From assembly GCA_950097015.1 (NCBI GenBank), contig CATNEN010000039.1, positions 20,460,001 through 20,524,000 on the forward strand: a stretch of DNA of 64,000 nucleotides, read 5' to 3'. Origin of the DNA: Macrostomum hystrix (lineage: Eukaryota; Animalia; Platyhelminthes). Of the stretch, positions 17,627 through 52,800 are shown one piece after another. The notes beneath the pieces are model-generated. The model searched no databases. It saw nothing but the letters and a program-made list of their open reading frames with translations, and had not been told where the DNA came from. Each line of letters opens with the position of its first letter. Position 1 is the stretch's first letter. The position numbers were made by a program, and so were the translations under genes.

Positions 17627-19079
17627 AATGTTGTGCACGGCTCACATGAAATAACAATTATATCCATGGCCAGGAGAATTTACGATTTTACGTTAGAACT
17701 AATCGGTTTATTATCCCAGTTCACTTCTATCTACTTCGTATATAATCTTTGATATTACCCTCTAAAGTTGCTGTTTAAGAAGTGCACTGTATCACTTGTA
17801 ATCCGCAGATACTTTTTGTAGCTCGTACCAGTTTTTATTACTATTTTCTTAGCCTGCATAAATGACCTTGCAATATTACGTAACTTACTTCCTCTTCTAA
17901 GAATAGACGCACGAACTATATTGAACAATTGAACCACTGATATTCATGTGCATGTGCATAATATTTTCTTTAGTGACAGCTAGAGTACATGCGCAGCCCG
18001 CGAGATGGAGTTCTGTGTGTTTCCGCTGCATAACTCCCGAGAACACTCACTCACACTCACACAGTAGTAATATTACATAATAGTAGTATTATACTACAGT
18101 GGTCCTTGGGGTGTACCCAACACTTGCCCTGAAATTTTCATTGTGGTGATAGAGGAAATTAAATATTATTTTTGGACAATACAAAAGTATGTTAACAAAC
18201 GTATAATGTTACTAATAATTAACAGAGTTATTATTAAAAGAGAGTTAACATTGGATAGCAAATTGCATCGGAAACACCATGGTTCACTGAGTTAATTAAA
18301 TAAAAATTCAATAAAAATTTTTACATTCTCATAATTGATTCGCAAGGAGGTGAATTTGAGATTCGCGACATCTGTGGAACTTAAGAAAGAAGAATTGAAA
18401 GAATCGCCATTCAAAATACAGTCATTTATTTTAGCAGTCTTTATAATGCCTGAAAATAGCAGAACATTGGATTTGCGCCTCCGATTTCATGTGTAAAGGG
18501 CAATTGTGTTAAAGTTAAGAATGTACGAAAAATATGCCTCGACTCTTCTTGCAACCAATGCAGAAGATTGTTCAGAATTCAATTTTCTCTTCTGGTGGCA
18601 AATGTCAATGGCGCAAACAGAGATAAAATGTAAGAAAAGTTTATTTGAGTATGAAGATCAAACATTTTGTGCTTGAATTCATAAACTCATAAACTAATTC
18701 ATTGTCGTTTATGTTTTCTTCCGTGAAAATAAACTTGAAAACAGCGTTTCTCCACGGTAATAAAAATATTAATTTAGCAGCATAACAAAATTGTAATAAC
18801 TAAGTTTGAAATACCGTTTAGAGTAAAGAAAGTTAGAGTTTTTTTGCTACTAAGAGTTGTTGAATGCCTTTTTAACTATCCGCATATCTATAAAAAGTTA
18901 GAATTTTCGCATTGTCAATAGACACATTTTCAAACTACGGTGGCTTCTTGAAATTTAATCCTATATTTCTCGATCGAATTCGAGCTACATTATCAGTCCG
19001 AGGGTCAATAATTTATTTCCCGAGTACTGAGAATCCATGAACAAAATATTACTGTTTTGATCTGAAAATCTGACGTAAA

Positions 19080-27639
<8,560 letters not shown>

Positions 27640-29772: not shown

Positions 29773-32700
29773 TTAAACTAAAGCCGCTTCTTTGCTGAAC
29801 GCTGAAATCGACTCCTCAGCCATCGACCCGGTTGAGAACACCGACGGACTTGCGGGTGGAGGCGGCGGCGGCGGAGGGGGCGACCTTCGCGATTGCCAAC
29901 CGTTGCGCAATGAGACAGAGGCGTCGGTGAATAGAAGCGACGCTTCGCTCTCTAAGATGTCGGCGACATTCTGCTGCCGCTGCTGCTGCTGCTGTTGCAT
30001 CTGTCGAATACTTCGCAGCTGCTGCTGCCTGCTTTCGCTGCCACCAGCGACTGCTCGCGACGTTCCAGCCGGCGGGCTAATTGAACTGTTGGACGATTTG
30101 CGTCGCTTGTAGTAGGCCTTGAAATCCAACTGCTGCGTGAACTCGGCCTCCTTCTTTTGCCGCTCGTATTTCCAGTTGTGCTCGATGACTGCAGGATGGG
30201 GTTTTAAGTGAATTATGACACACTAATGAACTACGGAACACAGACACTGTACACAGACACTGTACACAGACACACACTCGCACACACTTATCAACGTCAG
30301 TAGTGCCTTTTTCCGCTCTATCCGATGAAACAACTTCCAGAATCACAAAACATTGGCATCGTCGAGATGTTCAACGATTCTTGTAGGGGTGTCTGGTGGC
30401 AAAAAAAGCCATCACAGGCATAATTTTTGTGCTCACAGAATTTCATCACGTAACCCCGTCGTCTATTATCGTTGACTATTTTAACGTGATTAATTTCCTA
30501 ATTTCTTCATTTTTAACCACAATGGATTCGCCAAAAAGGCTTATACAGAGCACCGCGATTCTTCCTTGTCACCGGGGTCTACGACAAGAATCGCTGAATA
30601 TCTCGACGATGCTGACGTCGGACGGCTTTGAAAGCTAGTTCATTGTAAAGGGTGGAAAATGTCGATTCGTATGGTGGACTTTCACGAAAATCGGTCATTC
30701 AGTTTTGGAGCTATGGTGAAGTAGGCAGTGTGTATTGGGAATACCACAGTTGTCTTTCTACTGTTTAAGGGAAGGGTGATTTCCCGTTGAGATTTCATGC
30801 AAACTGACAACAGTTTAAAGGGCTCACATTGATAGTCGGGATTTCTCGGTTTCCACCAGAATTTCTCCCAGCAGAGCAGGGCGGTAAAGAGCAGGACGAA
30901 AGCGAATGCGAGGACAAGCAGGTGCAGCTGGTTGGTGAAGAACAACGACCTGGCGATGCCCTCCGGCGATTTCGGATCGTCGAATTCCTGTTTGCGAGTG
31001 AAAGGTCACTCCGTTCCCGTCACTCTGTTCCCGTCACTCCGTTCCAGTCAGTCTCTCCCCGTCACTCTGTTCCCGTCACTCCGTTTCCGTCACTCCGTTT
31101 CCGTCACTCCGTTTCCGTCACTCCGTTTCCGTCACTCCGTTTCCGTCACTCCGTTTCCGTCACTCCGTTTCCGTCACTCTGTTCCCGTCACTCCGTTTCC
31201 GTCACTCCGTTTCCGTCACTCCGTTTCCGTCACTCCGTTTCCGTCACTCCGTTTCCGTCACTCCGTTTCCGTCACTCCGTTTCCGTCACTCCGTTCCCGT
31301 CACTCCGTTCCCGTCACTCCGTTCCCGTCACTCCGTTCCCGTCACTCCGTTCCCGTCACTCCGTTCCCGTCACTCCGTTCCCGTCACTCCGTTCCCGTCA
31401 CTCTGTCCTTATCACTCAGTTTTTTGTTCTATGTTTCAGCAACGAGCTGCTACCGCAACAAGAGAGCATGGCTGCTTCGTGCCTAACTAGCCATGCAAGA
31501 AGCTCTGCCCTATGTCAACAATTGAAGGCTGGAAGCATCGATTGGATTCTAAGCATTCGTTTTGGCTTAATCAATATATGCTCAAAACTAAGGCGCGTCA
31601 GCTGCTGCTTTCTCAGAAATTCGAAAGCATCGTCTGTTAGATTTCTTAAATTTTCTGGTCATATTTCTCTCAAAATCAATGTAGTAATTTGATTTTGCAA
31701 TTAATCCAGGTAGCCAGGGCTAATTAATCCAGGTAGCCAGGGCTATTTAATCCAGGTAGCCAGGGCTAATTAATCTCGGTAGCCAGGGCTAATTAATCTC
31801 GGTAGCCAGGGCTAGTTAATCTCGGTAGCCAGGGCTAATTAATCTCGGTAGCCAGGGCTAATTAATCTCGGTAGCCAGGGCTATTTAATCCAGGTAGCCA
31901 GGGCTATTTAATCCAGGTAGCCAGGGCTATTTAATCCAGGTAGCCAGGGCTAATTAATCTCGGTAGCCAGGGCTAGTTAATCTCGGTAGCCAGGGCTATT
32001 TAATCCAGGTAGCCAGGGCTATTTAATCCAGGTAGCCAGGGCTATTTAATCCAGGTAGCCAGGGCTAATTAATCTCGGTAGCCAGGGCTAATTAATCTCG
32101 GTAGCCAGGGCTAGTTAATCTCGGTAGCCAGGGCTAATTAATCTCGGTAGCCAGGGCTAATTAATCTCGGTAGCCAGGGCTATTTAATCCAGGTAGCCAG
32201 GGCTATTTAATCCAGGTAGCCAGGGCTATTTAATCCAGGTAGCCAGGGCTAATTAATCTCGGTAGCCAGGGCTAGTTAATCTCGGTAGCCAGGGCAAATT
32301 AATCTCGGTAGCCAGGGCTAATTAATCTCGGTAGCCAGGGCTATTTAATCCAGGTAGCCAGGGCTATTTAATCCAGGTAGCCAGGGCTAATTAATCTCGG
32401 TAGCCAGGGCTAATTGATCCAGGTAGCCAGGGCTAATTGATCCAGGTAGCCAGGGCTAATTAATCTCGGTAGCCAGGGCTATTTAATCCAGGTAGCCAGG
32501 GCTAATTAATCTCGGTAGCCAGGGCTAGTTAATCCAGGTAGCCAGGGCTAATGAATCTCGGTAGCCAGCGCTAATTAATCTCGGTAGCCAGGGCTAGTTA
32601 ATCTCTGTAGCCAGGGCTAATTAATCTCGGTAGCCAGGGCTAATTAATCTCGGTAGCCAGGGCTATTTAATCCAGGTAGCCAGGGCTAATTAATCTCGGT

Positions 32701-35700
32701 AGCCAGGGCTATTTAATCCAGGTAGCCAGGGCTAATTAATCTCGGTAGCCAGGGCTAGTTAATCCAGGTAGCCAGGGCTAATGAATCTCGGTAGCCAGCG
32801 CTAATTAATCTCGGTAGCCAGGGCTAATTAATCTCGGTAGCCAGGGCTATTTAATCCAGGTAGCCAGGGCTAATTAATCTCGGTAGCCAGGGCTATTTAA
32901 TCCAGGTAGCCAGGGCTAATTAATCTCGGTAGCCAGGGCTAGTTAATCCAGGTAGCCAGGGCTAATGAATCTCGGTAGCCAGCGCTAATTAATCTCGGTA
33001 GCCAGGGCTAGTTAATCTCGGTAGCCAGGGCTAGTTAATCTCGGTAGCCAGGGCTAATTAATCTCGGTAGCCAGGGCTAATTAATCTCGGTAGCCAGGGC
33101 TAATTAATCTCGGTAGCCAGGGCTAATTAATCTCGGTAGCCAGGGCTAATTAATATCGGTAGCCAGGGCTATTTAATCCAGGTAGCCAGGGCTAATTAAT
33201 CTCGGTAGCCAGGGCTAATTGATCCAGGTAGCCAGGGCTAATTAATCTCGGTAGCCAGGGCTAATTAATCTCGGTAGCCAGGGCTAATTAATCTCGGTAG
33301 CCAGGGCTAATTAATCTCGGTAGCCAGGGCTAATTAATCTCGGTAGCCAGGGATATTTAATCCAGGTAGCCAGGGCTATTTAATCCAGGTAGCCAGGGCT
33401 AATTAATCTCGGTAGCCAGGGCTAATTAATCTCGGTAGCCAGGGCTAATTAATCTCGGTAGCCAGGGCTAATTAGTCTCGGTAGCCAGGGCTAATTAATC
33501 CAGGTAGCCAGGGCTATTTAATCCAGGTAGCCAGGGCTAATTAATCCAGGTAGCCAGGGATATTTAATCCAGGTAGCCAGGGCTATTTAATCCAGGTAGC
33601 CAGGGCTAATTAATCCAGGTAGCCAGGGCTAATTAATCCAGGTAGCTGGGCTAATTGATCTAGGTAGCCAGGGCTAGTTAATCTTGGTAGCCAGGGCTAA
33701 TTGATCTCGGTAGCCAGGGCTAATTGATCCAGGTAGCCAGGGCTAATTGATCTAGGTCTCTGTGTCCGGGGCTAATTAATTAGCTGCTGGTAAGTCGGGG
33801 CTAATTAATCCAGGTAGCCAGGGCTAATTAATCTAGGTAGCCAGAACTCGCAGATAGCTAAGTCAAATTAAACAGCATCAGAATGCTTACCGCCTCGCTA
33901 CCCTTGTGCTGCAGTCCAACAAGATCAACAAGCACCCTGTGCTGCTTGGTAACTAGCCAGCTGATGAGGCAGTTAGTGACACTGGGCTCCAGTTTGGTGA
34001 GAAGTCCGCGGACAGACGGTCGCTTAATTACCATCTGTAGTTTGATGTTGAGCACTGAAGCCGGATGCTCCTGACGCATGTGCAGGTACATGAAGTGCTC
34101 AATCAGCGCACCGTAATGCCGGGCTGCCTCACTGCCGGCGTCTCCGTGACTGGCGTTCCGCGATGTCGATTGGCGAACGTCGAACGAGCTATCGCTGGAG
34201 TGTTGCAGCGAGGAGTCTCTGACCAACTCGCTCCAGGACTGCACCACTGAGAAATGGAAGCAGGTGACGGCAACGGAGTGACGGCAACGGAGTGACGGGA
34301 ACGGAGTGACGGGAACGGAGTGACGGGAACGGAGTGACGGGAACGGAGTGACGGGAACGGAGTGACGGGAATCTATACAGACATCTAGCTCGTTGTAAAG
34401 TACAGTTTAATGATAAATACCTTACTGAGTTGCACCCAAGTTGTGTTTACAGTGGGAAAGCCAAACACGAATTCATAAAATTTCGAACAACAATGGAGGC
34501 CCCGCTGCAGTAAAGTGCAGGTTTCACATCGCGTGTATTGGGAAGTTTTATTACCTTGACAAGGCAGCCACAGAAGCTATACCTGCACTTTTTATTCTCT
34601 CACGAACCGCAGAATCAGACTGAATTTCATAATCTTATCAAATCCACCTAAATCCTTTATATTAATAAACTACTATTCTTACTATTATTATATTATATCC
34701 CGTACATGCCGAGCTGCGACATTTAGCTGTAAGATTAGCGCATGCCTCAGTTAACAACCGACATTTGGCTTGTTTATTAAACTTACTGAATTTTATAAAT
34801 GCTCCTCTGATTCTTACCGATCGGACTCGATCCCATTTCGTAGGCTATGATCTCCTCGTAAGAGCCGTTAACGACAGTCATCTGGAAAATAAAAAAGTTG
34901 AACAAAGGTTTACTTATAACAAGTAAATAAGATGTTTGATTTATATACCAAACAACAGAAAAAAAAATTTAGTTATTTTTTTTAAATCACTTTTTAGTAA
35001 AAAATCTAGAATCGATATAGATATTTTTTTAGTTTACTATAAAATATATAGGATTCATAATTATTAGTTGCTTTTTTACTAACGAGAAAAAATTAATTCA
35101 ATAAATGTTTTTTTATTTTTAAAATTGTGTATAAAAATTTCTTTTATTTATATTTTACATTAATTCATAAATTCTTGATGATGTTTATCAATAATATATC
35201 AATATATATTCGAAAATATAATGACAATAAAATATTTGGCGAAAATATCATAATTGATATGTTTAACTGATTTCCGTAATTGTATATATTAAATTTCGTG
35301 TACTAGTAACCAAAAAATTACTTTTTTTGCTGAAAGAAATTGTGCAAATGTGTGAATGGTTCTTTAATGTTACGCGTTATATAAGTTTCATGGAAATTTA
35401 ACGAAATTTTATTTCTGGACCTGATTGTTTACCGACGTAAATGTGACTTATTCTCGATAAAAATTCTCAAACACCTGTTTTCGAATGTTACTGAGTCTTA
35501 GAGACAATCTTTCCATTGTTCTAAAGGTGCAAATCTGACAGCTAGAAAAATGTAGAGATTGAAGTTAATTACCTTTGACAGCCGTTAAATTGAACCCTTA
35601 AATTGTGTTTTTAATTGAAACTGACAGGCTGCAGTATGTCAACGATACATTTCTTAGGTTTCCACGGAAAAGGACAGATTTGAACGTACAGTCTCCAGTT

Positions 35701-38700
35701 AGTAAGGATCTCGATTTAGTCTAAATCAAATCATGCAGCCCTTACTAACGAGAAAAAATTAATTCAATAAATGTCTCGAGCAGTTTGTAACTAGGAATAA
35801 TTTAAATTATATTCTATGACTGCTAATCAAAATAAAATCATTTTAATCATTACGATCAGTTACGAATACCAGCATCGACCATGTAATTTCTAACATTAGC
35901 TTGAAACAGTTTGGAATCGTCCAAAGACTGCGAGCTCTGTCCCAGGGCCGTGGTGATGCCGGCGGTGAACATTGAGGTGATGACTAAGCCGAAGCAAATC
36001 CACAGGAAGGCGAATAGGCGACCGCAGATGGTTTTTGGCGAGCGATCGCCGTAGCTGGTGGTTTGACAGTCGGGTCCAGATGGTTTTGAGTTGATAGTTA
36101 CGAGATTTTTTATGTTATATTATTAGAAACAAAAAGCTGCGAGAAAATATTGTAGCCTTGCAGGGGGGAGAGAAGGGGAAGAGGAGAGATCTAAAAAGGG
36201 AAAGGAGAGATCTGAAGGGGAGAGGAGAGATCTAAAAAGGGAAAGGAGAAATCTGAAGGGGAGAGGAGAGATCTAAAAAGGGAAAGGAGAGATCTGAAGG
36301 GGAGAGGAGAGATCAGAAGGGTGAGAGGAGAGATTGAAGGGGGAGAGGAGAGATCGGAAGGGGGAGAGGACAGATCGGAAGGGGGAGAGGACAGATCGGA
36401 AGGGGGAGAGGAGAGATCGGAAGGGGGAGAGGACAGATCGGAAGGGGGAGAGGAGAGATCGGAAGGGGGAGAGGAGAGATCGGAAGGGGGAGAGGAGAGA
36501 TCGGAAGGGGGGGAGGAGAGATCGGAAGGGGGAGAGGAGAGATCGGAAGGGGGAGAGGAGAGATCGGAAGGGGGAGAGGACAGATCAGAAGGAGGAGAGG
36601 AGAGATTGAAGGGGAGAGGAGAGATCGGAAGGGGGAGAGGAGAGATCGGAAGGGGGAGAGGACAGATCAGAAGGGGGAGAGGAGAGATCGGAAGGGGGAG
36701 AGGAGAGAACGGAAGGGGGAGAGGAGAGATCAGAAGGAGGAGAGGAGAGATTGAAGGGGAGAGATCGGAGTGAAAGTAGGAGTCGTATAAGGAGGAGATA
36801 AATGTTTATTGGGGGATAAGAAGACTATGTGTTGGCTACAGAAAATTTTGTTGCGCATATTGAAAAAAACCAGCCAGACACAGCTATCCCTACAAAAACT
36901 TTTTTTGCTAACTTGTTGTTTTTTCAACAGGTCCTGAAAACGTGTTAATTTTGAAACTTCCAAATCGATTCACCGCTTCCTCTAGTAGGGCCACCGAAGC
37001 AAATAAAAAGCAAAAGTAGCGCAGTGGCCTGCGTCTTGTATTTTTAGAACAGAATTTAATTAGATTTTTGTGTTTCTGAGCCAATTTCTCAAAGCTGGTA
37101 GCGAACTGGGCATAAACAGACAGTCAAGCTAAAAGTGCTCGGCAAAAAGTTTTAGTCAACTAAATCGAGTCAGTTTCGGTCAGACAGTGTTTAAGTTGGT
37201 CGAGTTGTTGAAATAAACACAATCCAATCGCTACACATCATTTTGGGAGAGTTTTGTAACAAGAAAGCTTAGAGGATTCCACAGTGGCGGCCAAGGCAAC
37301 AAGGATTTGTGGGAAACTGTTAGTAGGCCGTCGATCTATTGCAATTCTGAATGGGGATTTCTAGCTGGGAGGCGGGGAAATTATCTGAACTCTCTTTTTG
37401 GCCTCTTTTTTCGACCTCCTGTGACCTCTACGCCTCTTCTACCCTTTCTTCCAGCAGTTCCGGCAAAACTTGTTCGTAGGCGGGGCTCGCACAGAGACTG
37501 AAAGTTTCTACCACAATTTTTCCTTCATCATTTTCGCGGCTGCATCCATCTTGTCTGCCAGTTTGTTAACAATATTGAATTTCATTGCTGTAAGCATTCG
37601 GTTGGTTTAAAAAATGTGACTTTCCAGCAAGGAACTGTCAAGAAAGCTGCAATGTTTGAATCAAAGTGAGAGAATGGAGAGTTAAGTGTGAGAGAATGGG
37701 AGAGTTAAGTGGGAGAGAATGGAGAGTTAAGTGGGAGAGAATGGAGAGTTAAGTGTGAGAGAATGGTAGAGTTAAGTGGGAGAGAATGGGAGAGTTAAGT
37801 GGGAGAGAATGGAGAGTTAAGTGGGAGAGAATGGAGAGTTAAGTGGGAGAGAATGGAGAGTTAAGTGTGAGAGAATGGTAGAGTTAAGTTGGAGAGAATG
37901 GAGAGTTAAGTGGGAGAGAATGGAGAGTTAAGTGTGAGAGAATGGGAGAGTTAAGTGGGAGAGAATGGAGAGTTAAGTGGGAGAGAATGGAGAGTTAAGT
38001 GTGAGAGAATGGTAGAGTTAAGTTGGAGAGAATGGAGAGTTAAGTGGGAGAGAATGGTAGAGTTAAGTTGGAGAGAATGGGAGAGTTAAGTGGGAGAGAA
38101 TGGAGAGTTAAGTGGGAGAGAATGGAGAGTTAAGTGGGAGAGAATGGAGAGTTAAGTGTGAGAGAATGGTAGAGTTAAGTTGGAGAGAATGGAGAGTTAA
38201 GTGGGAGAGAATGGAGAGTTAAGTGTGAGAGAATGGGAGAGTTAAGTGGGAGAGAATGGAGAGTTAAGTGGGAGAGAATGGAGAGTTAAGTGTGAGAGAA
38301 TGGTAGAGTTAAGTTGGAGAGAATGGAGAGTTAAGTGGGAGAGAATGGTAGAGTTAAGTTGGAGAGAATGGAGAGTTAAGTGGGAGAGAATGGTAGAGTT
38401 AAGTGGGAGAGAATGGAGAGTTAAGTGGGAGAGAATGGAGAGTTAAGTGGGAGAGAATGGAGAGTTAAGTGGGAGTGAATGGAGAGTTAAGTGGGAGTGA
38501 ATGGGAGGGCTCTGTTGCAGGGAATCGAGGTTCTGCACTGTGACACATAAATGGGTTACCCAGGCCGAAAGTACAATATGGGATAACCGATTTCGTTAAG
38601 AACGTGACATTTGATCCCAGACGAACAACGCGCTCTCACCCAACGGTTGTCATGGTGATGAAAGCCCACCAGCAGCCCTCCCAGAAGCCGCGCAGGAACG

Positions 38701-41700
38701 GCCTGGGAAATTCTTGAGGATTTTTTAGGCGCTCCTGAAATTTATTAGGCAATGACCGATTATTAATTAGACAAGGCTACTTGTACCTACGCAAGACAAT
38801 GTCAATAGAATTTTAGATTAGGATTTTTAGAAAAAAAACTAATTATGAGAATCCTTTTAAAGAAAACTAGTTACAATAGCAAAAACTATCTCGTCGACAT
38901 GTTTCTCACGGAGAAAATGTTACGGAAGCCACGTTCTCCGCAAAATGTAGGGTTTTTTAGCAGTGTATTTTTCTGTGAAAACCAGCCTCGCAAACATTTT
39001 CTAGGAAACACAGTTTCTAAGAAACCTTCCATTTCTAGCGGTCCTACCGCATTAATTCAGCCTCGCCGTGGTTTTACAGTGTTATCCGTGCGCATCAGTT
39101 TTAAGAATCAGCTAAGCTCACCATCAGCCAGGCGATGACGCCGGCGTAGGCGCATGACACCAGAATGATGACCAGCAGAGGCCAGGCGTGTACAACGAAG
39201 TTCAGCTGCGAGATGCCAGACAGGTGCGAACGGAGGCTCGGATCCAACCAGACCGCGCCTGACAGGGATTTAGGGGATGGGCGAGGATTTGAGTTTGAAT
39301 CTCAGCCAAGGATTATTATAAAAGTGTGACCTCAAGTGTGATCTCAAGTGTGACCTCAAGTGTGACCTCCTGTGTTACCTCCTGTGTGACCTTAAGTGTG
39401 ACCTCATGTGTGACCTCCTGTGTGACCTCAAGTGTGACCTCAAGTGTGACCTCCAGTGTGACCTCCAGTGTGACGTCCAGTGTGACGTCCAGTGTGGCTT
39501 CAATTGTGACCTCCAGTGTGACCTCCAGTGTGATCTCCAGTGTGATCTCCAGTGTGATCTCCAGTGTGATCTCCAGTGTGATCTCCAGTGTGATCTTAAG
39601 TGTGTCATTCGGTTTTGGAGATATTGTGAAGCATAGGCTGTGGTATTCGAAATACCCTTATGTCTTTCTACGGTTAATAAATCCATTAGTCTCACGGTGC
39701 GTTGTTTTTGTGAAATCAAGATCCAGTACCGGTACCTCCTAGTTAAAACTGAGAAACAGTCATCTGTAATTAGCGAACCCTATAGGTCTTGAAAACATGT
39801 ATTTCAGTAAGCCTTTTTAAAGGGCTAGAACTGTGAATTTAACTGGAGTATGCTAATGACAGGCAGTCTAGACTTGTCACCTGAAAAAAGTCCAGAGTTG
39901 AGATGCGAAATATAGACTTATGCTAAATAAAACGGGCGCTATCTGACAGAAAATGACAAACTCTATCAACTATTCAATGAGAATTGAAGGAAATCTAAGT
40001 TGTGCCTGAATAAATTGATCTAAAATGAGGTGAGATAGAGATGGTGAGAATGAGAGAGTTAGAAAGATACAGGGTGAGATCGAGAATGAGAGAAAGCTGT
40101 TAAGGTGAGAGGGGAAATGATTAATGATTCTTAAAAAATTAAAATCAAGGAATATTGGGATTTTCGGAATATAGTGATTCTTGGAATATTAGGATTCTTG
40201 GAATATTGGGATTCTTGGAATATTGGGATTCTTGGAATATTGTGATTCTTGGAATATTGGGATTCTTGGAATATTGGGATTCTTGGAATATTGGGATTCT
40301 TGGAATATTGTGATTCTTGGAATATTGGGATTATTGTAATATGATGATTTTTGGAATATTGGGATTCTTGGAATCTTGGGATTCTTGACATATTGGGATT
40401 CTTGGAATATTGGGATTCTTGGAATATTGGGATTCTTGGAATATTGGGATTCTTGGAATATTGGGATTCTTGGAATATTGGGATTCTTGGAATATTGGGA
40501 TTCTTGGAATATTGGGATTCTTGGAATATTGGGATTCTTGGAATATTGAGATTCTTGGAATATTCACACTCTTGGAATATTGGGTTACTTAGAATATTTG
40601 GATTCTTCGAATATAGGGATTCTTGGAATATAGCGATTCTTGGAATATTGGGATTCTTGGAATATTGGGATTCTTGGAATATTGGGATTCTTCGAATATA
40701 GGGATTCTTCGAATATAGCGATTCTTGGAATATTGGGATTCTTGGAATATTGGGATTCTTGGAATATTGGGATTCTTCGAATATAGGGATTCTTCGAATA
40801 TAGCGATTCTTGGAATATTGGGATTCTTGGAATATTGGGATTCTTGGAATATTGGGATTTTAGGAATATTGGGTTACAATGAATAATTGGATTCCTGGAA
40901 TATTGGGATTCTTGGAATATTGGCATTCTTGGAATATTGAGATTCCTAGAATATTGGGGTTTATCATCGTGAGATATATACAAAATCTTGGGATTTCGTG
41001 AATGATAGAATAATGGTAATCCTTCAATATTTTTGGGATTTCCAAACTGTTGGGATTACAAAGATCAACTGTTGTGAATTTCTGCTTTTAAGATTAAACT
41101 GGTTTCGTGTTTCGAAAGCGATTTTGCTGCACATGGAAATAAAATGTATAATCTCCGTTTTCCGCGAAATCAACAGACTTAGTTTTATTTTCGATATATT
41201 TTGTTTTTCTTCTAATTTATAACCGATATAAATAAGGACATTTTATTTAGGGACAAAATTTCTCTAATCTGGCCGTAATCAGAGCCTTATACCGCAGAAT
41301 CGCTTGGCATTGCATATTTTAGTTTGCCCTTGCGACATAACTGAAAATACTGTCCTAAATAAGGAACCACACAAAAAATAGAAAAATGAATTGTTCTAAT
41401 CAGCAAATTCACTATACAAAGTCACTAATTTGCTAGCACTAGCAGCCACTATTGGAAATTTCCTTTCATATTTCTTTCCTCTCAGAGATTTAGAAATTTG
41501 TTCAAGCCAAAAAAACGTTTATTGACCCTCGTTCTTTGAAAGCAAAAGAAAAACTTAAACGTGGTTAATCTTTCTTACTTTAAATTTGTTTAGATTTCAG
41601 AAGAACCTGCAGTTAAAAATTCTTAGGATCAATTTAGATTATGTTAAGATAATCAATGGATTAGGGAAGATTACACTTCGATAATCTAGGGATTTGGGCG

Positions 41701-43771
41701 GATTACAGTTCGATAATCTAGGGATTTAGGTAGATTACAGTTCGATAATCTAGGGATTTGGGCGGATTACAGTTCGATAATCTAGAGATTTGGGTAGATT
41801 ACACTTCGATAATCTAGAGATTAGGGTAGATTACAGTTCGATAATCTAGAGATTAGGGTAGATTACAGTTCGATAATCTAGGGATTTTGGCGGATTACAG
41901 TTCGATAATCTAGGGATTTGGGTAGATTACAGTTCGATAATCTAGGGATTTGGGTAGATTACAGTTCGATAATCTATAGGGATTTCGGTAGTGTGGTCAG
42001 ATAATCTTGGGATTTTGGCAGAATATGGTCAGATAATCTGTGGATTTAAGTGGATTATGGTCAGATAATCTGTAGATTTAGGTAGATTATGGTCAGATAA
42101 TCTGTAGATTTAGGTAGATTATGGTCAGATAATCTGTAGATTTAGGTAGATTATGGTCAGATAATTTATGGATTTAGGTGGATTATGGACAGATAATCTG
42201 TAGATTTAGGTAGATTATATGGTCAGATAATCTGTAGATTTAGGTAGATTATGGTCAGATAATTTATGGATTTAGGTGGATTATGGACAGATAATCTGTA
42301 GATTTAGGTGGATTATGGTCAGATAATCTGTAGATTTAGGTGGATTATGGTCAGATGATCTGTTGATTTAGGTAGATTATGGTCAGATAATTTATGGATT
42401 TAGGTAGATTTTGGTCAGATAATTTATGGATTTACGTAGATTATGGTCAGATAATTTATGGATTTAGGTAGATTATGGTCAGATAATTTATGGATTTACG
42501 TAGATTATGGTCAGATAATTTATGGATTTACGTAGATTATGGTCAGATAATTTATGGATTTACGTAGATTATGGTCAGATAATTTATGGATTTAGGTAGA
42601 TTATGGTCAGATAATTTATGGATTTAGGTAGATTATGGTCAGATAATTTATGGATTTAGGTAGATTTTGGTCAGATAATTTATGGATTTAGGTAGATTAT
42701 GGTCAGATAATTTATGGATTTAGGTAGATTTTGGTCAGATAATTTATGGATTTAGGTAGATTATGGTCAGATAATTTATGGATTTAGGTAGATTATGGTC
42801 AGATAATTTATGGATTTAGGTAGATTTTGGTCAGATAATTTATGGATTTACGTAGATTATGGTCAGATAATTTATGGATTTACGTAGATTATGGTCAGAT
42901 AATTTATGGATTTAGGTAGATTATGGTCAGATAATTTATGGATTTAGGTAGATTATGGTCAGATAATTTATGGATTTACGTAGATTATGGTCAGATAATT
43001 TATGGATTTAGGTAGATTATGGTCAGATAATTTATGGATTTAGGCGGATTAGGATTAGATTCTTGTGTAATTTCAGGATTTAGTGCTCGCTACCCATTTC
43101 GCTGGTTGAACTGAACTAGTGTTAAGTGTCTTGCTAAACGACACAAAAATGGTTCCAGTGGAGTTGGGAATCGAACCTCCGACCTTCAAGTCGTGAGTCC
43201 GACGCTCTAGCCGCAATAGGCCACAATCCACGATTATTACGATGATTGTATGAATAAATAAACTTTGGATTTTGATTAAAGAGTAGAAACTCACCAGGCG
43301 TGGTTACAATGGGCAGGAATGTGTGTTCCGTAAGCAAGTCAAACAGTGCCATTTTGGTCACGGGCAAGCTGATGTTGCAGTCCCTTGTGGCACCGCTGCT
43401 CAGCAAGTGGCTCTCGCTACTGAACTGACGATAACGCAGGCCGGCCTTGGAGCCGCAATGTCCTAGGCCGACTCTGGCCAGGTCCCAGAATACGCCATGC
43501 AGTTGGTTCTGCTGCGAATCCGAGAATGGAGGATGACTGAAGTGGCAGACGATCAGCTCCGACATTGGACTAGTCGGAGATAGGCCCATCTGTCTTTCTG
43601 TCTTTACAACGATTTACCTGTCTAAACTGCCAACGATAATGATCTCTGATGTGATAAAGTTGCATAGATATATACATGCTGCAGCAGCAGCAGCAACAGC
43701 AGCAGTCGCTTCGCTATTGGCTCCTGGGTACTTGGCTGATCAGCATTCTCGGAAACTGTTAAGCTTGTAGC
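29773..43771 (-). CDS. iGluR-topology ligand-gated channel with a K+-channel selectivity filter (GluR0/AvGluR1-like: S1-M1-P[TTVGYGD]-M3-S2-M4-cytoplasmic tail), ~590 aa
   Basis: Exons on the minus strand: 43771-43676 (tentative, contains a poly-Leu signal), 43589-43295, 39258-39122, 38734-38640, 36054-35895, 34881-34818, 34246-33891, 30987-30828, 30188-29773, total 1779 nt with all phases consistent. S1 HPPF..HGVFWDL..TFLP; M1 WPLLVIILVSCAYAGVIAWLME; P-loop [33 protein letters not shown]; M3 GRLFAFLWICFGLVITSMFTAGITTAL; S2 start MTVVNGSYEE; third TM LHLLVLAFAFVLLFTALLCWE. Confidence 0.88.
30307..30660. mobile_element. MITE-like element with long imperfect terminal inverted repeats, last intron of the channel gene
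   Basis: gcatcgtcgagatgttcaacgattcttgt (from 30356) pairs with acaagaatcgctgaatatctcgacgatgc (to 30612) at 27/29; degenerate pairing extends about 50 bp further out. Confidence 0.7.
31005..31410 (+). repeat. 14-bp minisatellite (CCGTCACTCCGTTY) x ~28
   Basis: Direct inspection. Confidence 0.95.
31700..33845. repeat. 23-bp minisatellite (TAATTAATCTCGGTAGCCAGGGC) x ~90
   Basis: Direct inspection. Confidence 0.97.
34263..34371 (-). repeat. 14-bp minisatellite, reverse complement of the 31005-31410 array, x ~8
   Basis: gtgacgggaacgga is the reverse complement of tccgttcccgtcac. Confidence 0.93.
36163..36770. repeat. ~21-bp purine-rich minisatellite (GAGGAGAGATCGGAAGGGGGA)
   Basis: Direct inspection. 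Confidence 0.95.
37664..38505. repeat. 22-23-bp minisatellite (AAGTGGGAGAGAATGGAGAGTT)
   Basis: Direct inspection. Confidence 0.95.
39322..39605. repeat. 12-bp minisatellite (GTGTGACCTCMA)
   Basis: Direct inspection. Confidence 0.93.
40148..40960. repeat. 17-bp minisatellite (GGAATATTGGGATTCTT)
   Basis: Direct inspection. Confidence 0.95.
41665..43055. repeat. Two adjoining, related 32-bp minisatellites (GATTACAGTTCGATAATCTAGGGATTTGGGTA, then GATTATGGTCAGATAATTTATGGATTTAGGTA)
   Basis: Direct inspection; the unit switches near 41990. Confidence 0.94.
43075..43235 (-). mobile_element. tRNA-derived SINE family B fragment
   Basis: Reverse strand has A-box-like tggcctattgcggctagagcg, B-box ggttcgattcc, then gcaagacacttaac and aaatgggta motifs shared with 47118-47605. 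Confidence 0.7.
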
Positions 43772-44964: not shown

Positions 44965-45292
44965 TGGAGAGGGTGGTCAGTGGGAGAGCGGTTAACGCGT
45001 TCGCTTCTCGCACCAAGGTTCCTAAGTTCGATTCCGCGGCGAGGCCACATTTATCAGCCGCGGAGAGAAGGCTTGGTGGCTTGTCGTGCAATTTACGCCC
45101 TTGAGGGCCAACATCCAAGGCACAGTGAGAGTGTACACTGCCTGACGATGAGAAAGTCAGGGCAGATGTACACACCTGTGTGAGCGTGTGCTCAGGATTC
45201 AGTGAAATTAGCAGAATTGCCTCCTCGCTGGCTGCGGGTCCAGTGTCACCATTGCTCGCAGCCCTCCTGCAATTATTATTATTATTGTTATT
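44965..45292 (+). mobile_element. tRNA-derived SINE family A, copy 3 (most complete)
   Basis: A-box gtgggagagcggttaacgcg, B-box agttcgattcc, core hairpin and (ATT)n tail. Confidence 0.88.
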
Positions 45293-46849: not shown

Positions 46850-49800
46850 TCAAGCTGTTGGCTCAGTTCTCAACGGTATAACATAGCGCTGTGGCACAGC
46901 CAATGACGGCGCAATGCCTTCCGGATATGATGAGTCCTCGAAGAACAGCTGATAGTCTTCGTGTACAGAGGTTGGCGGCTCGTCCACCAGGGCCCGGTAG
47001 AAACAGGTGGTCTGCGGATACAGGGCCAGCACCATCTGGTGGCGAATGGGGATAATCTGTGTTAGACATTATGAATTACAAAATCAAGTCTTTGCAGTAT
47101 GAGACAGTCTGTCTGCTCAACCATTACAGTGAGCTTGCAGCATAAGGTAGGTCCGGAGTTCGAATCTCAGCCCGAGCTGCACAACCATTACAGGTAGCTT
47201 GCAGCATAGGGTAGGTCCGGAGTTCGAATCTCAGCCCAAACTGCACAACCATTACAGGGAGCTTGCAGCATAGGGTAGGTCCGGAGTTCAAATCTCAGCC
47301 CGAGCTGCACAACCATTACAGGGAGCTTGCAGCATAGGGTAGGTCCGGAGTTCGAATCTCAGCCCGAGCTGCACAACCATTACAGGGAGCTTGCAGCATA
47401 GGGTAGGTCCGGAGTTCGAAACGCAGACCAATCTTAAAAAACAATTTGTACCATCGAGCAAGACACAAATAAATTCCTAGTCCTACAGTTTACCCAGCTT
47501 GTAAAATGGGTGTTAGCATTAGCTGGGGTAGAAATTCGTGTGGCCGTCCGCGGCATGAACAGCTGTACACAGCTGTTGCCGGGTCACTAGCCAAACTGTC
47601 ATTAATTATCTATGTAGCATACTAATTATAAGATCATTTTGAACCAGATTTAGGATAACAAAAATCGAATCGGATTACTGGCTAACTAATCCAATGGATT
47701 ATCGAAATAGCAATACAGTTCAAATTTTTTGTAATCCGATCTGTTTTTCGAAATTTTAAGAATAGCATAAAAACGTTTCAAGATTCAATTTTAGATTTTC
47801 AGATTTGAGAATCCAAGATATAAGCTTACTGAATTTGAGGATCAATGATACGGATTATTACATTGAAGGATCCAAAAATAAATTACTGGATTTGCAGATA
47901 ACGGGTTATTGTAGTTGAGATCTAAAATTGGATTTATGGATCTAGGATAGGGTTCTTAGATTTGAGGATCTAGGATAGGGTTCTTAGATTTGAGGATCTA
48001 AGATAGGGTTTTTAGATTTGAGGATCTAGGATAGGGTTCTTAGATTTGAGGATCTGAGATAGGGTTTTCAGATTTGAGGATCTAAGATAGGGTTTTTAGA
48101 TTTGAGGATCTAAGATAGGGTTTTTAGATTTTAGGATCTAAGATAGGACGTTTAGATTTGAGGATATATAGGATAGGGTTCTTAGATTTGAGGATCTAAG
48201 ATAGGGTTTTTAGATTTGAGGATCTAAGATAGGGTTTTTAGATTTGAGGATCTAAGATAGGGTTCTTAGATTTGAGGATCTAAGATAGGGTTTTTAGATT
48301 TGAGGATCTAAGATAGGGTTCTTAGATTTGAGGATCTAAGATAGGGTTTTTAGATTTGAGGATCTAAGATAGGGTTTTTAGATTTGAGGATCTAAGATAG
48401 GGTTTTTAGATTTGAGGATCTAGGATAGGGTTTTTAGATTTGAGGATCTAAGATAGGGTTTTTAGATTTGAGGATCTAGGATAGGGTTCTTAGATTTGAG
48501 GATCTAAGACAGGGTTTTAGATTTGAGGATCTAGGATAGGGTTCTTAGATTTGAGGATCTAAGATAGGACGTTTAGATTTGAGGATCTAAGATAGGGTTT
48601 TTAGATTTCAGGATCTAAGATAGGACGTTTAGATTTGAGGATCTATAGGATAGGGTTCTTAGATTTGAGGATCTAAGATAGGGTTTTTAGATTTGAGGAT
48701 CTATAGGATAGGGTTCTTAGATTTGAGGATCTAAGATAGGGTTTTTAGATTTGAGGATCTAAGATAGGGTTTTTAGATTTGAGGATCTAAGATAGGGTTT
48801 TTAGATTTGAGGATCTAAGATGGGGTTTTTAGATTTGAGGATCAAGATAGGGTTTTTAGATTTGAGGATCAAGATAGGGTTTTAAGATTTGAGGATCAAG
48901 ATAGGGTTTTTAGATTTGAGGATCTAGGATAGGGTTTTTAGATTTGAGGATCTAAGATAGGACGTTTAGATTTGAGGATCTAAGATAGGGTTTTTAGATT
49001 TCAGGATCTAAGATAGGACGTTTAGATTTGAGGATCTATAGGATAGGGTTCTTAGATTTGAGGATCTAAGATAGGGTTTTTAGATTTGAGGATCTAAGAT
49101 AGGGTTTTTAGATTTGAGGATCTAAGATAGGGTTTTTAGATTTGAGGATCTAAGATGGGGTTTTTAGATTTGAGGATCAAGATAGGGTTTTTAGATTTGA
49201 GGATCAAGATAGGGTTTTTAGATTTGAGGATCAAGATAGGGTTTTTAGATTTGAGGATCTAAGATAGGGTTTTTATATTTTAGGATCAAGATAGGGTTTT
49301 TAGATTTGAGGATCTAAGATAGGGTTTTTAGATTTGAGGATCAAGATAGGGTTTTTAGATTTGAGGATCTAAGATGGGGTTTTTAGATTTGAGGATCAAG
49401 ATAGGGTTTTTAGATTTGAGGATCTAAGATGGGGTTTTTAGATTTGAGGATCTAGGATAGGGTTTTTAGATTTGAGGATCTAAGATAGGGTTTTTAGATT
49501 TGAGGATCTAAGATAGGGTTTTTAGATTTGAGGATCAAGATAGGGTTTTTAGATTTGAGGATCTAAGATAGGGTTTTTAGATTTGAGGATCAAGATAGGG
49601 TTCTTAGATTTGAGGATCTAAGATAGGGTTTTTAGATTTGAGGATCAAGATAGGGTTTTTAGATTTGAGGATCAAGATAGGGTTTTTAGATTTGAGGATC
49701 AAGATAGGGTTTTTAGATTTGAGGATCTAAGATAGGGTTTTTAGATTTGAGGATCAAGATAGGGTTTTTAGATTTGAGGATCTAAGATAGGGTTTTTAGA

Positions 49801-52800
49801 TTTGAGGATCAAGATAGGGTTTTTAGATTTGAGGGTCTAAGATAGGGTTTTTAGATTTGAGGATCAAGATAGGGTTTTTAGATTTGAGGATTAAGATAGG
49901 GTTTTTAGATTTGAGGATCTAAGATAGAGTTTTTAGATTTGAGGATCAAGATAGGGTTTTTAGATTTGAGGATCAAGATAGGGTTTTTAGATTTGAGGAT
50001 CTAAGATAGGGTTTTTAGATTTGAGGATCAAGATAGGGTTTTTAGATTTGAGGATCTAAGATAGGGTTTTTAGATTTGAGGATCAAGATAGGGTTCTTAG
50101 ATTTGAGGATCAAGATAGGGTTTTTAGATTTGAGGATCAAGATAGGGTTTTTAGATTTGAGGATCTAAGATAGGGTTTTTATATTTTAGGATCAAGATAG
50201 GGTTTTTAGATTTGAGGATCTAAGATAGGGTTTTTAGATTTGAGGATCAAGATAGGGTTTTTAGATTTGAGGATCTAAGATAGGGTTTTTAGATTTGAGG
50301 ATCAAGATAGGGTTTTTAGATTTGAGGATCTAAGATAGGGTTTTTAGATTTGAGGATCAAGATAGGGTTTTTAGATTTGAGGATTAAGATAGGGTTTTTA
50401 GATTTGAGGATCTAAGATAGGGTTTTTAGATTTGAGGATCTAAGATAGGGTTTTTAGATTTGAGGATCAAGATAGGGTTTTTAGATTTGAGGATTAAGAT
50501 AGGGTTTTTAGATTTGAGGATCAAGATAGGGTTTTTAGATTTGAGGATCAAGATAGGGTTTTTAGATTTGAGGATCAAGATAGGGTTTTTAGATTTGAGG
50601 ATCTAAGATAGGGTTTTTAGATTTGAGGATCAAGATAGGGTTTTTAGATTTGAGGATCTAAGATAGGGTTTTTAGATTTGAGGATCTAAGATGGGGTTTT
50701 TAGATTTGAGGATCAAGATAGGGTTTTTAGATTTGAGGATCAAGATAGGGTTTTTAGATTTGAGGATCAAGATAGGGTTTTTAGATTTGAGGATCTAAGA
50801 TAGGGTTTTTATATTTTAGGATCAAGATAGGGTTTTTAGATTTGAGGATCTAAGATAGGGTTTTTAGATTTGAGGATCAAGATAGGGTTTTTAGATTTGA
50901 GGATCTAAGATGGGGTTTTTAGATTTGAGGATCAAGATAGGGTTTTTAGATTTGAGGATCTAAGATGGGGTTTTTAGATTTGAGGATCTAGGATAGGGTT
51001 TTTAGATTTGAGGATCTAAGATAGGGTTTTTAGATTTGAGGATCTAAGATAGGGTTTTTAGATTTGAGGATCAAGATAGGGTTTTTAGATTTGAGGATCT
51101 AAGATAGGGTTTTTAGATTTGAGGATCAAGATAGGGTTCTTAGATTTGAGGATCTAAGATAGGGTTTTTAGATTTGAGGATCAAGATAGGGTTTTTAGAT
51201 TTGAGGATCAAGATAGGGTTTTTAGATTTGAGGATCAAGATAGGGTTTTTAGATTTGAGGATCTAAGATAGGGTTTTTAGATTTGAGGATCAAGATAGGG
51301 TTTTTAGATTTGAGGATCTAAGATAGGGTTTTTAGATTTGAGGATCAAGATAGGGTTTTTAGATTTGAGGGTCTAAGATAGGGTTTTTAGATTTGAGGAT
51401 CAAGATAGGGTTTTTAGATTTGAGGATTAAGATAGGGTTTTTAGATTTGAGGATCTAAGATAGAGTTTTTAGATTTGAGGATCAAGATAGGGTTTTTAGA
51501 TTTGAGGATCAAGATAGGGTTTTTAGATTTGAGGATCTAAGATAGGGTTTTTAGATTTGAGGATCAAGATAGGGTTTTTAGATTTGAGGATCTAAGATAG
51601 GGTTTTTAGATTTGAGGATCAAGATAGGGTTCTTAGATTTGAGGATCAAGATAGGGTTTTTAGATTTGAGGATCAAGATAGGGTTTTTAGATTTGAGGAT
51701 CTAAGATAGGGTTTTTATATTTTAGGATCAAGATAGGGTTTTTAGATTTGAGGATCTAAGATAGGGTTTTTAGATTTGAGGATCAAGATAGGGTTTTTAG
51801 ATTTGAGGATCTAAGATAGGGTTTTTAGATTTGAGGATCAAGATAGGGTTTTTAGATTTGAGGATCTAAGATAGGGTTTTTAGATTTGAGGATCAAGATA
51901 GGGTTTTTAGATTTGAGGATTAAGATAGGGTTTTTAGATTTGAGGATCTAAGATAGGGTTTTTAGATTTGAGGATCTAAGATAGGGTTTTTAGATTTGAG
52001 GATCAAGATAGGGTTTTTAGATTTGAGGATTAAGATAGGGTTTTTAGATTTGAGGATCAAGATAGGGTTTTTAGATTTGAGGATCAAGATAGGGTTTTTA
52101 GATTTGAGGATCAAGATAGGGTTTTTAGATTTGAGGATCTAAGATAGGGTTTTTAGATTTGAGGATCAAGATAGGGTTTTTAGATTTGAGGATCTAAGAT
52201 AGGGTTTTTAGATTTGAGGACCAAGATAGGGTTTTTAGATTTGAGGATCTAAGATAGGGTTTTTAGATTTGAGGATCTAAGATAGGGTTTTTAGATTTGA
52301 GGATCAAGATAGGGTTTTTAGATTTGAGGATCAAAACTGGTATCGGGTTTTTCTTCAAGAAATATGTATATTAGTCAGAAAGATGGACTGATCGACACAA
52401 TAATCTGCGTAATTATTAATATCATTATTAAAACTGACTAATATAATTTAGCAATCAATACTAGCAACAAGAACAGCGAATTTTGACGAAGAATTTGGCT
52501 ACAATTTTTAGCCAGCTAACTAGATACACAGAGCGTGGGCAGAGAATGATTAGACAAACACCCAATTTAGCCGTCAGTAGATTGAACATGCCGATTCCAA
52601 TCAGGCCAGTCACGACACAAATAATTGGGACAGCTAAGCATACACTCGCTCAGTGTTCATCAATCAGAATCAGCTCTAGCTAGTGTTTTTAAACAAAAAT
52701 TTACCTTGGAAAATATCTCTAGAAAAAGGAAGGTCAAATCTTAAGCAGTGATGAAATAAAAATGTATCGAACTAGAAAATTTAAACGAATTTTAGGAATC

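Follow-up and report, generated by a model that had tools for sequence, protein, structure and literature searches.

The window analysed here is a 64,000-nucleotide stretch of the Macrostomum hystrix genome (contig CATNEN010000039.1, forward-strand positions 20,460,001 to 20,524,000). Its minus strand carries a gene that very probably encodes a channel with the body plan of ionotropic glutamate receptors (iGluRs) and the pore of a K+ channel. Stop-free frames and hand-checked boundaries placed eight certain coding exons and seven introns in this gene, which spans window positions 43589 to 29773. Together the exons comprise 1683 nt, that is 560 codons followed by a TAA, with zero internal stops. 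All acceptors end in CAG, the donors begin with GT (GTGAG, GTAAG or GTTAG) and the phases agree at 7/7 junctions. The introns measure 387 to 4036 nt and, as a preliminary description of this DNA had stated, are rich in minisatellites, consisting mostly of tandem arrays in which the unit comprises 12 to 32 bp. The same description counted nine exons and eight introns. Eight of these exons and seven of the introns are certain, while the ninth, a 5' exon starting at 43771, is a candidate only.

Exon 1 (43295–43589) encodes S1, the first lobe segment of the binding domain. It opens with the ATG at 43589, carries HPPFSD, GVFWDL and FLPIVTTP, and leaves in phase 1 at the donor CTG/GTGAGT. Exon 2 (39122–39258; acceptor TGTCAG/GC, phase 1 in, phase 0 out) holds the pre-M1 sequence AVWLDP and the M1 helix. 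The cytoplasmic linker, the pore helix and the first half of the selectivity filter follow in exon 3 (38640–38734), which ends at GG/GTGAGA within a glycine codon. The rest of this codon, YGD and the inner helix M3, from SMFTAGITTAL to KLFQAN, lie in exon 4 (35895–36054), which was supported by Pfam and hhalign. Exon 3 ends with ACC GTT GG and exon 4 starts with C TAC GGC GAT, so that splicing yields TTVGYGD with the glycine codon split as GG/C; the filter is indeed interrupted by an intron, as had been described. This third intron (36055–38639, 2585 nt, defined by its boundaries and a repeat scan) contains 21-bp and 22-bp minisatellites. The second binding-domain segment opens with S2a in exon 5 (34818–34881, MTVVNGSYEE..GSSPI; placed by paralogs, a Macrostomum lignano protein and its boundaries) and continues with S2b in exon 6 (33891–34246), where YGALIEHFMY places a glutamate at the iGluR position that binds the ligand alpha-amino group. 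Exon 7 (30828–30987) supplies the post-S2 linker and the transmembrane helix M4, and exon 8 (29773–30188) a K/R-rich juxtamembrane stretch and a Q-rich and P-rich tail that ends with the TAA at 29775–29773. The cytoplasmic tail is 138 aa long. All elements reported earlier, namely the S1 motifs HPPF..GVFWDL..FLPIVTTPG, a hydrophobic M1, the split filter, SMFTAGITTAL, an S2 in two exons, M4 and the Q/P-rich tail, were thus located on the minus strand.

We searched the 220-Mb assembly (42 contigs) with the pore exons and obtained three paralogs, on contigs C7, C33 and C11, each of which splits TTVG and YGD between exons. Comparison by tblastx revealed ordered exon blocks common to the paralogs and no conservation in the introns. 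Exon 1 is conserved in the C7 and C33 copies, exon 2 was matched in the paralogs as well, and for the C11 copy, the 10 kb retrieved ahead of the M1 exon yielded no S1 exon. In the C11 copy, S2a and S2b stand in one open frame (L038:7344-7757, corresponding to G000:C11:5506344-5506757 on the plus strand). This intron loss independently confirms the S2a/S2b junction of the window gene. Against the three paralogs, the proportion of synonymous differences (pS) was 0.64–0.70 and that of nonsynonymous differences (pN) 0.24–0.26 over 254–324 aligned codons, values which somewhat overstate the constraint as they derive from conserved high-scoring segment pairs; for the P-loop exon (exon 3), pN was as low as 0.04–0.06. 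To judge from these comparisons, we are dealing with a real gene under purifying selection, far beyond what chance would produce.

A HMMER scan with the M3 exon returned two close proteins, both from M. lignano (A0A1I8J4Y3, here P0002, and A0A1I8GUP9, here P0001), followed by cnidarian proteins. The window exons are collinear with residues 80-731 of P0002 at 60–100% identity per exon: 63% for exon 1 (residues 80-179), 79% for exon 2, 100% for exon 3 (residues 289-320), 91% for exon 4 and 85% for exon 7 (residues 575-626). Nothing in the window corresponds to two stretches of P0002, at about 180-235 and 374-425. These stretches were modelled with block-mean predicted local distance difference test (pLDDT) values of mostly 36-58 and, since they coincide exactly with intron positions of the window gene, look like intron read-through. 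Residues 84-640 of P0002 retrieved only the two M. lignano models and the S2b exon retrieved none, in searches that were limited by length and shared words. Starting from a member of the cnidarian clade (P0017), we obtained 259 relatives. Most of these are cnidarian (Hydra, Hydractinia, Nematostella, corals, octocorals and jellyfish), and others come from the acorn worm Saccoglossus and the annelid Dimorphilus; no rotifer protein was among the relatives listed. Some of them carry additional N-terminal Ig, CUB, EGF or FN3 domains. All 259 are named 'uncharacterized' or 'potassium channel domain-containing' in the databases. The family, described earlier as a poorly characterised invertebrate one, is not confined to obscure invertebrates but is large in Cnidaria.

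Both iGluR-type and K+ channel features were recognized at the sequence level. Scanned exon by exon against Pfam, exon 4 matched Ion_trans_2 (7.3e-8, 32.6 bits versus a cut-off of 22.5) and, below cut-off, Lig_chan (1.5e-4, 22.1 bits); the S1, S2a, S2b, M1 and M4 exons matched nothing. P0002 scored 2.3e-15 (56.7 bits) for Ion_trans_2 and lay at the threshold for Lig_chan (32.2 bits versus a cut-off of 30.8), and other family members reached 21-36 bits for Lig_chan. No Pfam binding-domain family was detected in the family members scanned, and the SBP_bac_3 scan of the M. hystrix genome gave no match in the window. Of the domain order anticipated earlier, Ion_trans_2 flanked by SBP_bac_3/PBP2 halves, the channel domain was recovered, but SBP_bac_3 was not matched by sequence. 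When a 23-sequence family profile was compared with the PDB, AtGLR3.4 was aligned in a single stretch (E 1.2e-11, profile positions 95-488), whereas K+ channels, with Kv, KcsA and TOK1 as the top sequence matches, covered no more than about 40-95 positions, all near the filter and the inner helix. Against a canonical iGluR that the same genome encodes without introns, the family reached a probability of 92.6% in hhalign. This alignment extends from the P-loop over M3, with FTA.LTTALT on YTANLAAFLT, and continues with S2 on S2; for exon 4, hhalign likewise set the M3 motif on iGluR SYTANLAAF. In the ESM Atlas, P0017 was placed beside its own cnidarian clusters and then near iGluRs, plant glutamate receptor-like proteins (GLRs) and ionotropic receptors (IRs), with bacterial GluR0-type clusters at 0.89, which we treat as a lead only. 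Clusters of K/R follow M1 and, in the form KYERQKKEAEF..KRRK, M4. Under the positive-inside rule, these clusters would place S1 and S2 outside the cell and thus invert the pore as in iGluRs.

Among 88 aligned family members, TTVGYGD is near-invariant, with one TLGYGD and one TVGFGD. The pore helix WWAF and the M3 motif S-x-F-T-A are nearly invariant, too. We take the pore helix and filter of the window gene to be nearly those of Shaker/Kv channels.

In a further approach, structure models of relatives were made for the M. lignano ortholog P0002 and for P0017. The AlphaFold2 model of P0002 (88-sequence alignment) reached block-mean pLDDT values of 79-97 in S1, the pore domain, S2 and M4, the M4 helix being located at residues 593-621 (pLDDT 82-94), and the model of P0017 had a mean pLDDT of 85.7 and a predicted template modelling score (pTM) of 0.72. 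For both models, all Foldseek matches listed were iGluR chains comprising the ligand-binding domain (LBD) and transmembrane domain (TMD), with E values down to 1.5e-13. VIA-align selected the ligand-binding core of GluR0 as the best match of both (P0002: Z score 19.6, 2.9 A, 215/221 residues; P0017: Z score 19.9), the alignments ranging over 211-215 of 221 residues at a root mean square deviation of 2.8-2.9 A. The GluR0 LBD matched P0002 between residues 86 and 569, a range that takes in segments before and after the pore. Next came glutamine-binding protein, the AvGluR1 LBD (Z score 17.0-17.4) and AtGLR3.4; AtGLR3.4 was aligned over the whole LBD-TMD chain (Z score 17.8, 338/365 residues, 4.7 A). 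In these models of relatives, the segments flanking the pore are thus predicted to fold as a bilobed domain of the periplasmic-binding type, as had been proposed from the sequence.

In textbooks, the 'missing link' that connects glutamate receptors with K+ channels is a channel combining a ligand-binding clamshell with a genuine K+ pore. Such channels have so far been known from bacteria (GluR0) and from one rotifer protein (AvGluR1); both are presented as such links in PMC12332018, PMC11479355 and PMC12226733. GluR0 of Synechocystis PCC 6803 and Nostoc is described as a prokaryotic K+-selective glutamate receptor (Chen et al. 1999, as cited in PMC12332018 and PMC11479355) without amino-terminal domain (ATD) and without M4 (PMC11479355). 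The window family shares with GluR0 the lack of an ATD, a clamshell of S1 and S2 that is interrupted by M1, P-loop and inner helix, and a TXVGYG-type filter. In contrast to GluR0, which binds amino acids and has neither M4 nor introns, the family possesses M4, a long cytoplasmic tail and spliceosomal introns, and lacks the carboxylate-binding arginine; identity between its models and GluR0 amounts to 13-16% in the aligned LBD. AvGluR1 of Adineta vaga combines a eukaryotic iGluR architecture with a K+ signature and is activated by glutamate and by hydrophobic and polar amino acids (Janovjak et al. 2011; Lomash et al. 2013; as cited in PMC12332018 and PMC12226733), and it is described as phylogenetically similar to bacterial iGluRs (PMC12226733). 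Like AvGluR1, the window family has a eukaryotic iGluR-type subunit with M4 and a K+ signature, the two LBDs being compared by fold only. Unlike AvGluR1 as reviewed, it has no ATD and a non-canonical pocket.

With metazoan iGluRs (AMPA, kainate, delta, NMDA, epsilon and lambda) and plant GLRs, the family shares the LBD-TMD-M4 plan, the M3 motif S-x-F/Y-T-A-x-L/V..L-T on SYTANLAAF, and S2 motifs. Those receptors differ in that they possess an ATD and an agonist triad of Arg, Thr and Asp/Glu and that their pore, which has a Q/R/N site, passes cations non-selectively, and identity to them is about 11-19%, with Pfam Lig_chan at threshold. The Ion_trans_2 match above cut-off and the pore helix with T-x-G-Y-G between two transmembrane helices are shared with Kv and KcsA pores, but the family has no voltage sensor, carries its pore between binding-domain halves and in an orientation predicted to be inverted, and adds M4. 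A large metazoan iGluR phylogeny mentions neither potassium nor GluR0-type sequences (PMC6307864). We found no description of the family in the literature searched, which lay outside subscription journals and included this phylogeny and a survey of voltage-gated-like channels in 623 species (PMC12749960). That is, the design is known, and the family appears to be unstudied.

We consider it rather likely that the gene encodes one subunit of 560 aa, counted from the conserved ATG, that joins the glutamate-receptor body plan to a K+-channel pore and acts as a ligand-gated K+ channel. The architecture itself we hold with high confidence: S1, M1, a re-entrant pore loop with a Kv-like pore helix and TTVGYGD, M3, S2, M4, and the K/R-, Q- and P-rich cytoplasmic tail. 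K+ selectivity is quite probable by analogy, given the filter and what is known of GluR0 and AvGluR1 (PMC11479355). For gating by a ligand, we see the chances as evenly balanced. By analogy to GluR0, AvGluR1 and iGluRs, four subunits would assemble around an inverted K+ pore. The clamshell outside the cell would close on a small ligand and pull on the linker between S2 and M3, the gate in M3 would open, and the resulting K+ flow would constitute an inhibitory, hyperpolarising response.

The acidic S2 residue at the amine-binding position is D in 83/88 and E in 4/88 members (E in LIEHF of the window gene), and the Ser/Thr of the preceding S2 GS/GT turn is present in 79/88. In S1, the 88 sequences have no conserved Arg or Lys from the 'P..G' strand up to the 'PG' motif, where iGluRs and amino-acid-binding proteins hold the carboxylate by an arginine. 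Since this arginine is missing family-wide and the acidic residue is kept, the ligand is probably neither glutamate nor another classical alpha-amino acid. Without the canonical arginine, it is doubtful whether the channel should be named a glutamate receptor. Alternatively, the clamshell might be a vestige or a structural module of a K+ channel that leaks or is gated by a partner protein, pH, ions or membrane stretch. The loss of an agonist-carboxylate arginine that iGluRs and amino-acid-binding proteins have would fit such a channel, as would the replacement of the family motifs YG and CC..C in the Macrostomum copies and a divergence of S1 and S2 too large for Pfam SBP_bac_3 or Lig_chan-Glu_bd. 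However, the acidic residue is kept in 87/88 members and the Ser/Thr of the turn in most, and both lobes were modelled with high confidence in a closed, GluR0-like form. Moreover, insect IRs also lack these residues and are ligand-gated nevertheless. We thus regard a vestigial clamshell as unlikely and, to judge from the residues retained, a functional cleft that does not take a classical alpha-amino acid as the probable state.

Several points weigh against a ligand-gated K+ channel all the same. With the S1 arginine lost, the clamshell may not bind anything, and a channel with a GYG filter need not be highly K+-selective. Searched as single exons, S1 and S2 match no Pfam or PDB sequence: paralog profiles of S1 and S2b yielded chance matches only when compared with PDB sequences. 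The predicted binding-domain fold comes from models of relatives rather than from the joined protein of the window, the splice model was read from the genome sequence with expression presumed, and no functional study of any member was found in the searchable literature. Finally, neither a signal peptide from the ATG at 43589 nor an upstream start was found, and S1 must reach the outside.

The ATG at 43589 lies about a dozen codons ahead of the first strand, and the ATG is placed likewise in the C7 and C33 paralogs. Upstream of it, an open frame with a run of leucines (..AKRLLLLLLLLQHVY.., 43628–43771, minus strand) is collinear with the signal-like N-terminus of the M. lignano model and constitutes the candidate 5' exon. 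Read from 43771 to 43628, it contains no ATG, having AAG where the M. lignano model has ATG, and its frame differs from that of exon 1; if 38 nt (GTTTAG...CAG, 43627-43590) were removed, the two frames would join and the spacing would equal that in M. lignano. The match to M. lignano is weak (E 15), its only basis being position and equal spacing. We considered that a trans-spliced leader might supply the start codon of this frame. If a signal peptide were truly missing, the binding domain could instead be cytoplasmic, which we disfavour because of the distribution of K/R and the signal peptides of cnidarian members.

The same AAG and shift of frame could be taken to mean that the window copy is a decaying or unexpressed paralog of a real family, without a working protein, and the introns swollen with minisatellites would agree. 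But 560 codons free of stops and frameshifts, seven intact pairs of splice sites, a pore exon 100% identical to that of M. lignano, pN far below pS against all paralogs and an ATG position shared with C7 and C33 make decay improbable, well below the vestigial clamshell in our estimate.

Further upstream, the 3.2 kb between the stop of an SGF29 homolog and the S1 exon contain no coding block conserved with the paralogs and no Pfam domain. No exons for an ATD or for voltage-sensor helices S1-S4 were found there, and in full-length relatives the signal peptide is directly followed by the S1 segment; the earlier statement that the protein has neither ATD nor voltage sensor thus holds. The SGF29 homolog itself is represented by its last exon (46853-47035, minus strand, the strand of the channel gene), about 3.2 kb upstream, with a Tudor domain (Pfam, 5.8e-16) and its own stop. 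Both M. lignano models begin with an SGF29 Tudor fragment. As the exon ends with its own stop in the window and is fused to the channel in both models, these models are chimeric and the gene order is conserved. A repeat of about 280 bp at 44976-45252 was the only paralog match by tblastx between the SGF29 stop and exon 1. Two more copies lie near the C11 paralog (L038, about 1221-1491, and L035, about 4449-4576). Since the repeat aligns in all frames, it is probably a mobile element rather than coding sequence of the channel.

Two further explanations carry next to no weight. That scattered exons were misread and belong to a conventional Kv, Kir or K2P channel or to a conventional non-selective iGluR might be argued from the pore exons, which on their own score best against Kv and KcsA pores, and from the single-exon Lig_chan score below cut-off, but it is ruled out by the fold and architecture: there are no S1-S4 helices and no second pore, S2 and M4 follow M3 as in iGluRs, and the filter is TTVGYGD instead of a loop with the iGluR Q/R/N site. 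A bacterial GluR0-type gene, acquired by contamination or recent horizontal transfer, would account for GluR0 as best structural match and for the likeness of AvGluR1 to bacterial iGluRs, but is just as negligible and refuted for this locus by seven spliceosomal introns, a feature already held against it, together with four dispersed paralogous copies on different chromosome-scale contigs, M4, SGF29 directly upstream as in the M. lignano models, and a family found across Cnidaria and several bilaterian phyla.

More tentatively, and with the odds in our view slightly against it, the window gene may belong, together with the three paralogs and over 250 relatives, mostly cnidarian, to an ancient animal family of K+-conducting ionotropic receptors that mediate fast inhibition directly upon binding of an extracellular ligand other than the classical alpha-amino acids. 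Such a family would form a branch of the iGluR superfamily in which a Kv-like filter was retained or regained and which standard iGluR classifications have missed. The family sharing this design is large and extends to cnidarians, a hemichordate, an annelid and flatworms. If the interpretation is true, animals possess a receptor class that hyperpolarises cells directly upon ligand binding, which bears on the evolution of inhibition in early nervous systems, and its members are possible compact chemogenetic silencers. The origin of the iGluR pore would become testable in laboratory animals such as Nematostella, Hydra, Clytia and Macrostomum.

In the same genome, we counted at least 138 Lig_chan matches. 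Several of these lie in canonical iGluR frames without introns, C38:30422412-30423233 and C7:8785120-8785956 being examples, which encode about 900-1050 aa. This count suggests that the iGluR repertoire of the flatworm is large.

Within the window, tRNA-like stretches (..GGTTCGATTCC.. and ..GGAGTTCGAATCTC..) occur in intron 1 (43150-43250) and at 47113-47420, where a 64-bp unit is repeated 4.8 times. ARAGORN called no tRNA gene in these repeats, which are thus probably remnants of tRNA-derived short interspersed nuclear elements. At 48001-52000, GC skew rises to between +0.74 and +0.78 at 33% GC, suggesting a long, strand-asymmetric G-rich satellite. A sharp shift in composition was also observed at 18001-22000, with a GC content of 0.30 at 18-20 kb and a GC skew of -0.33 at 20-22 kb.

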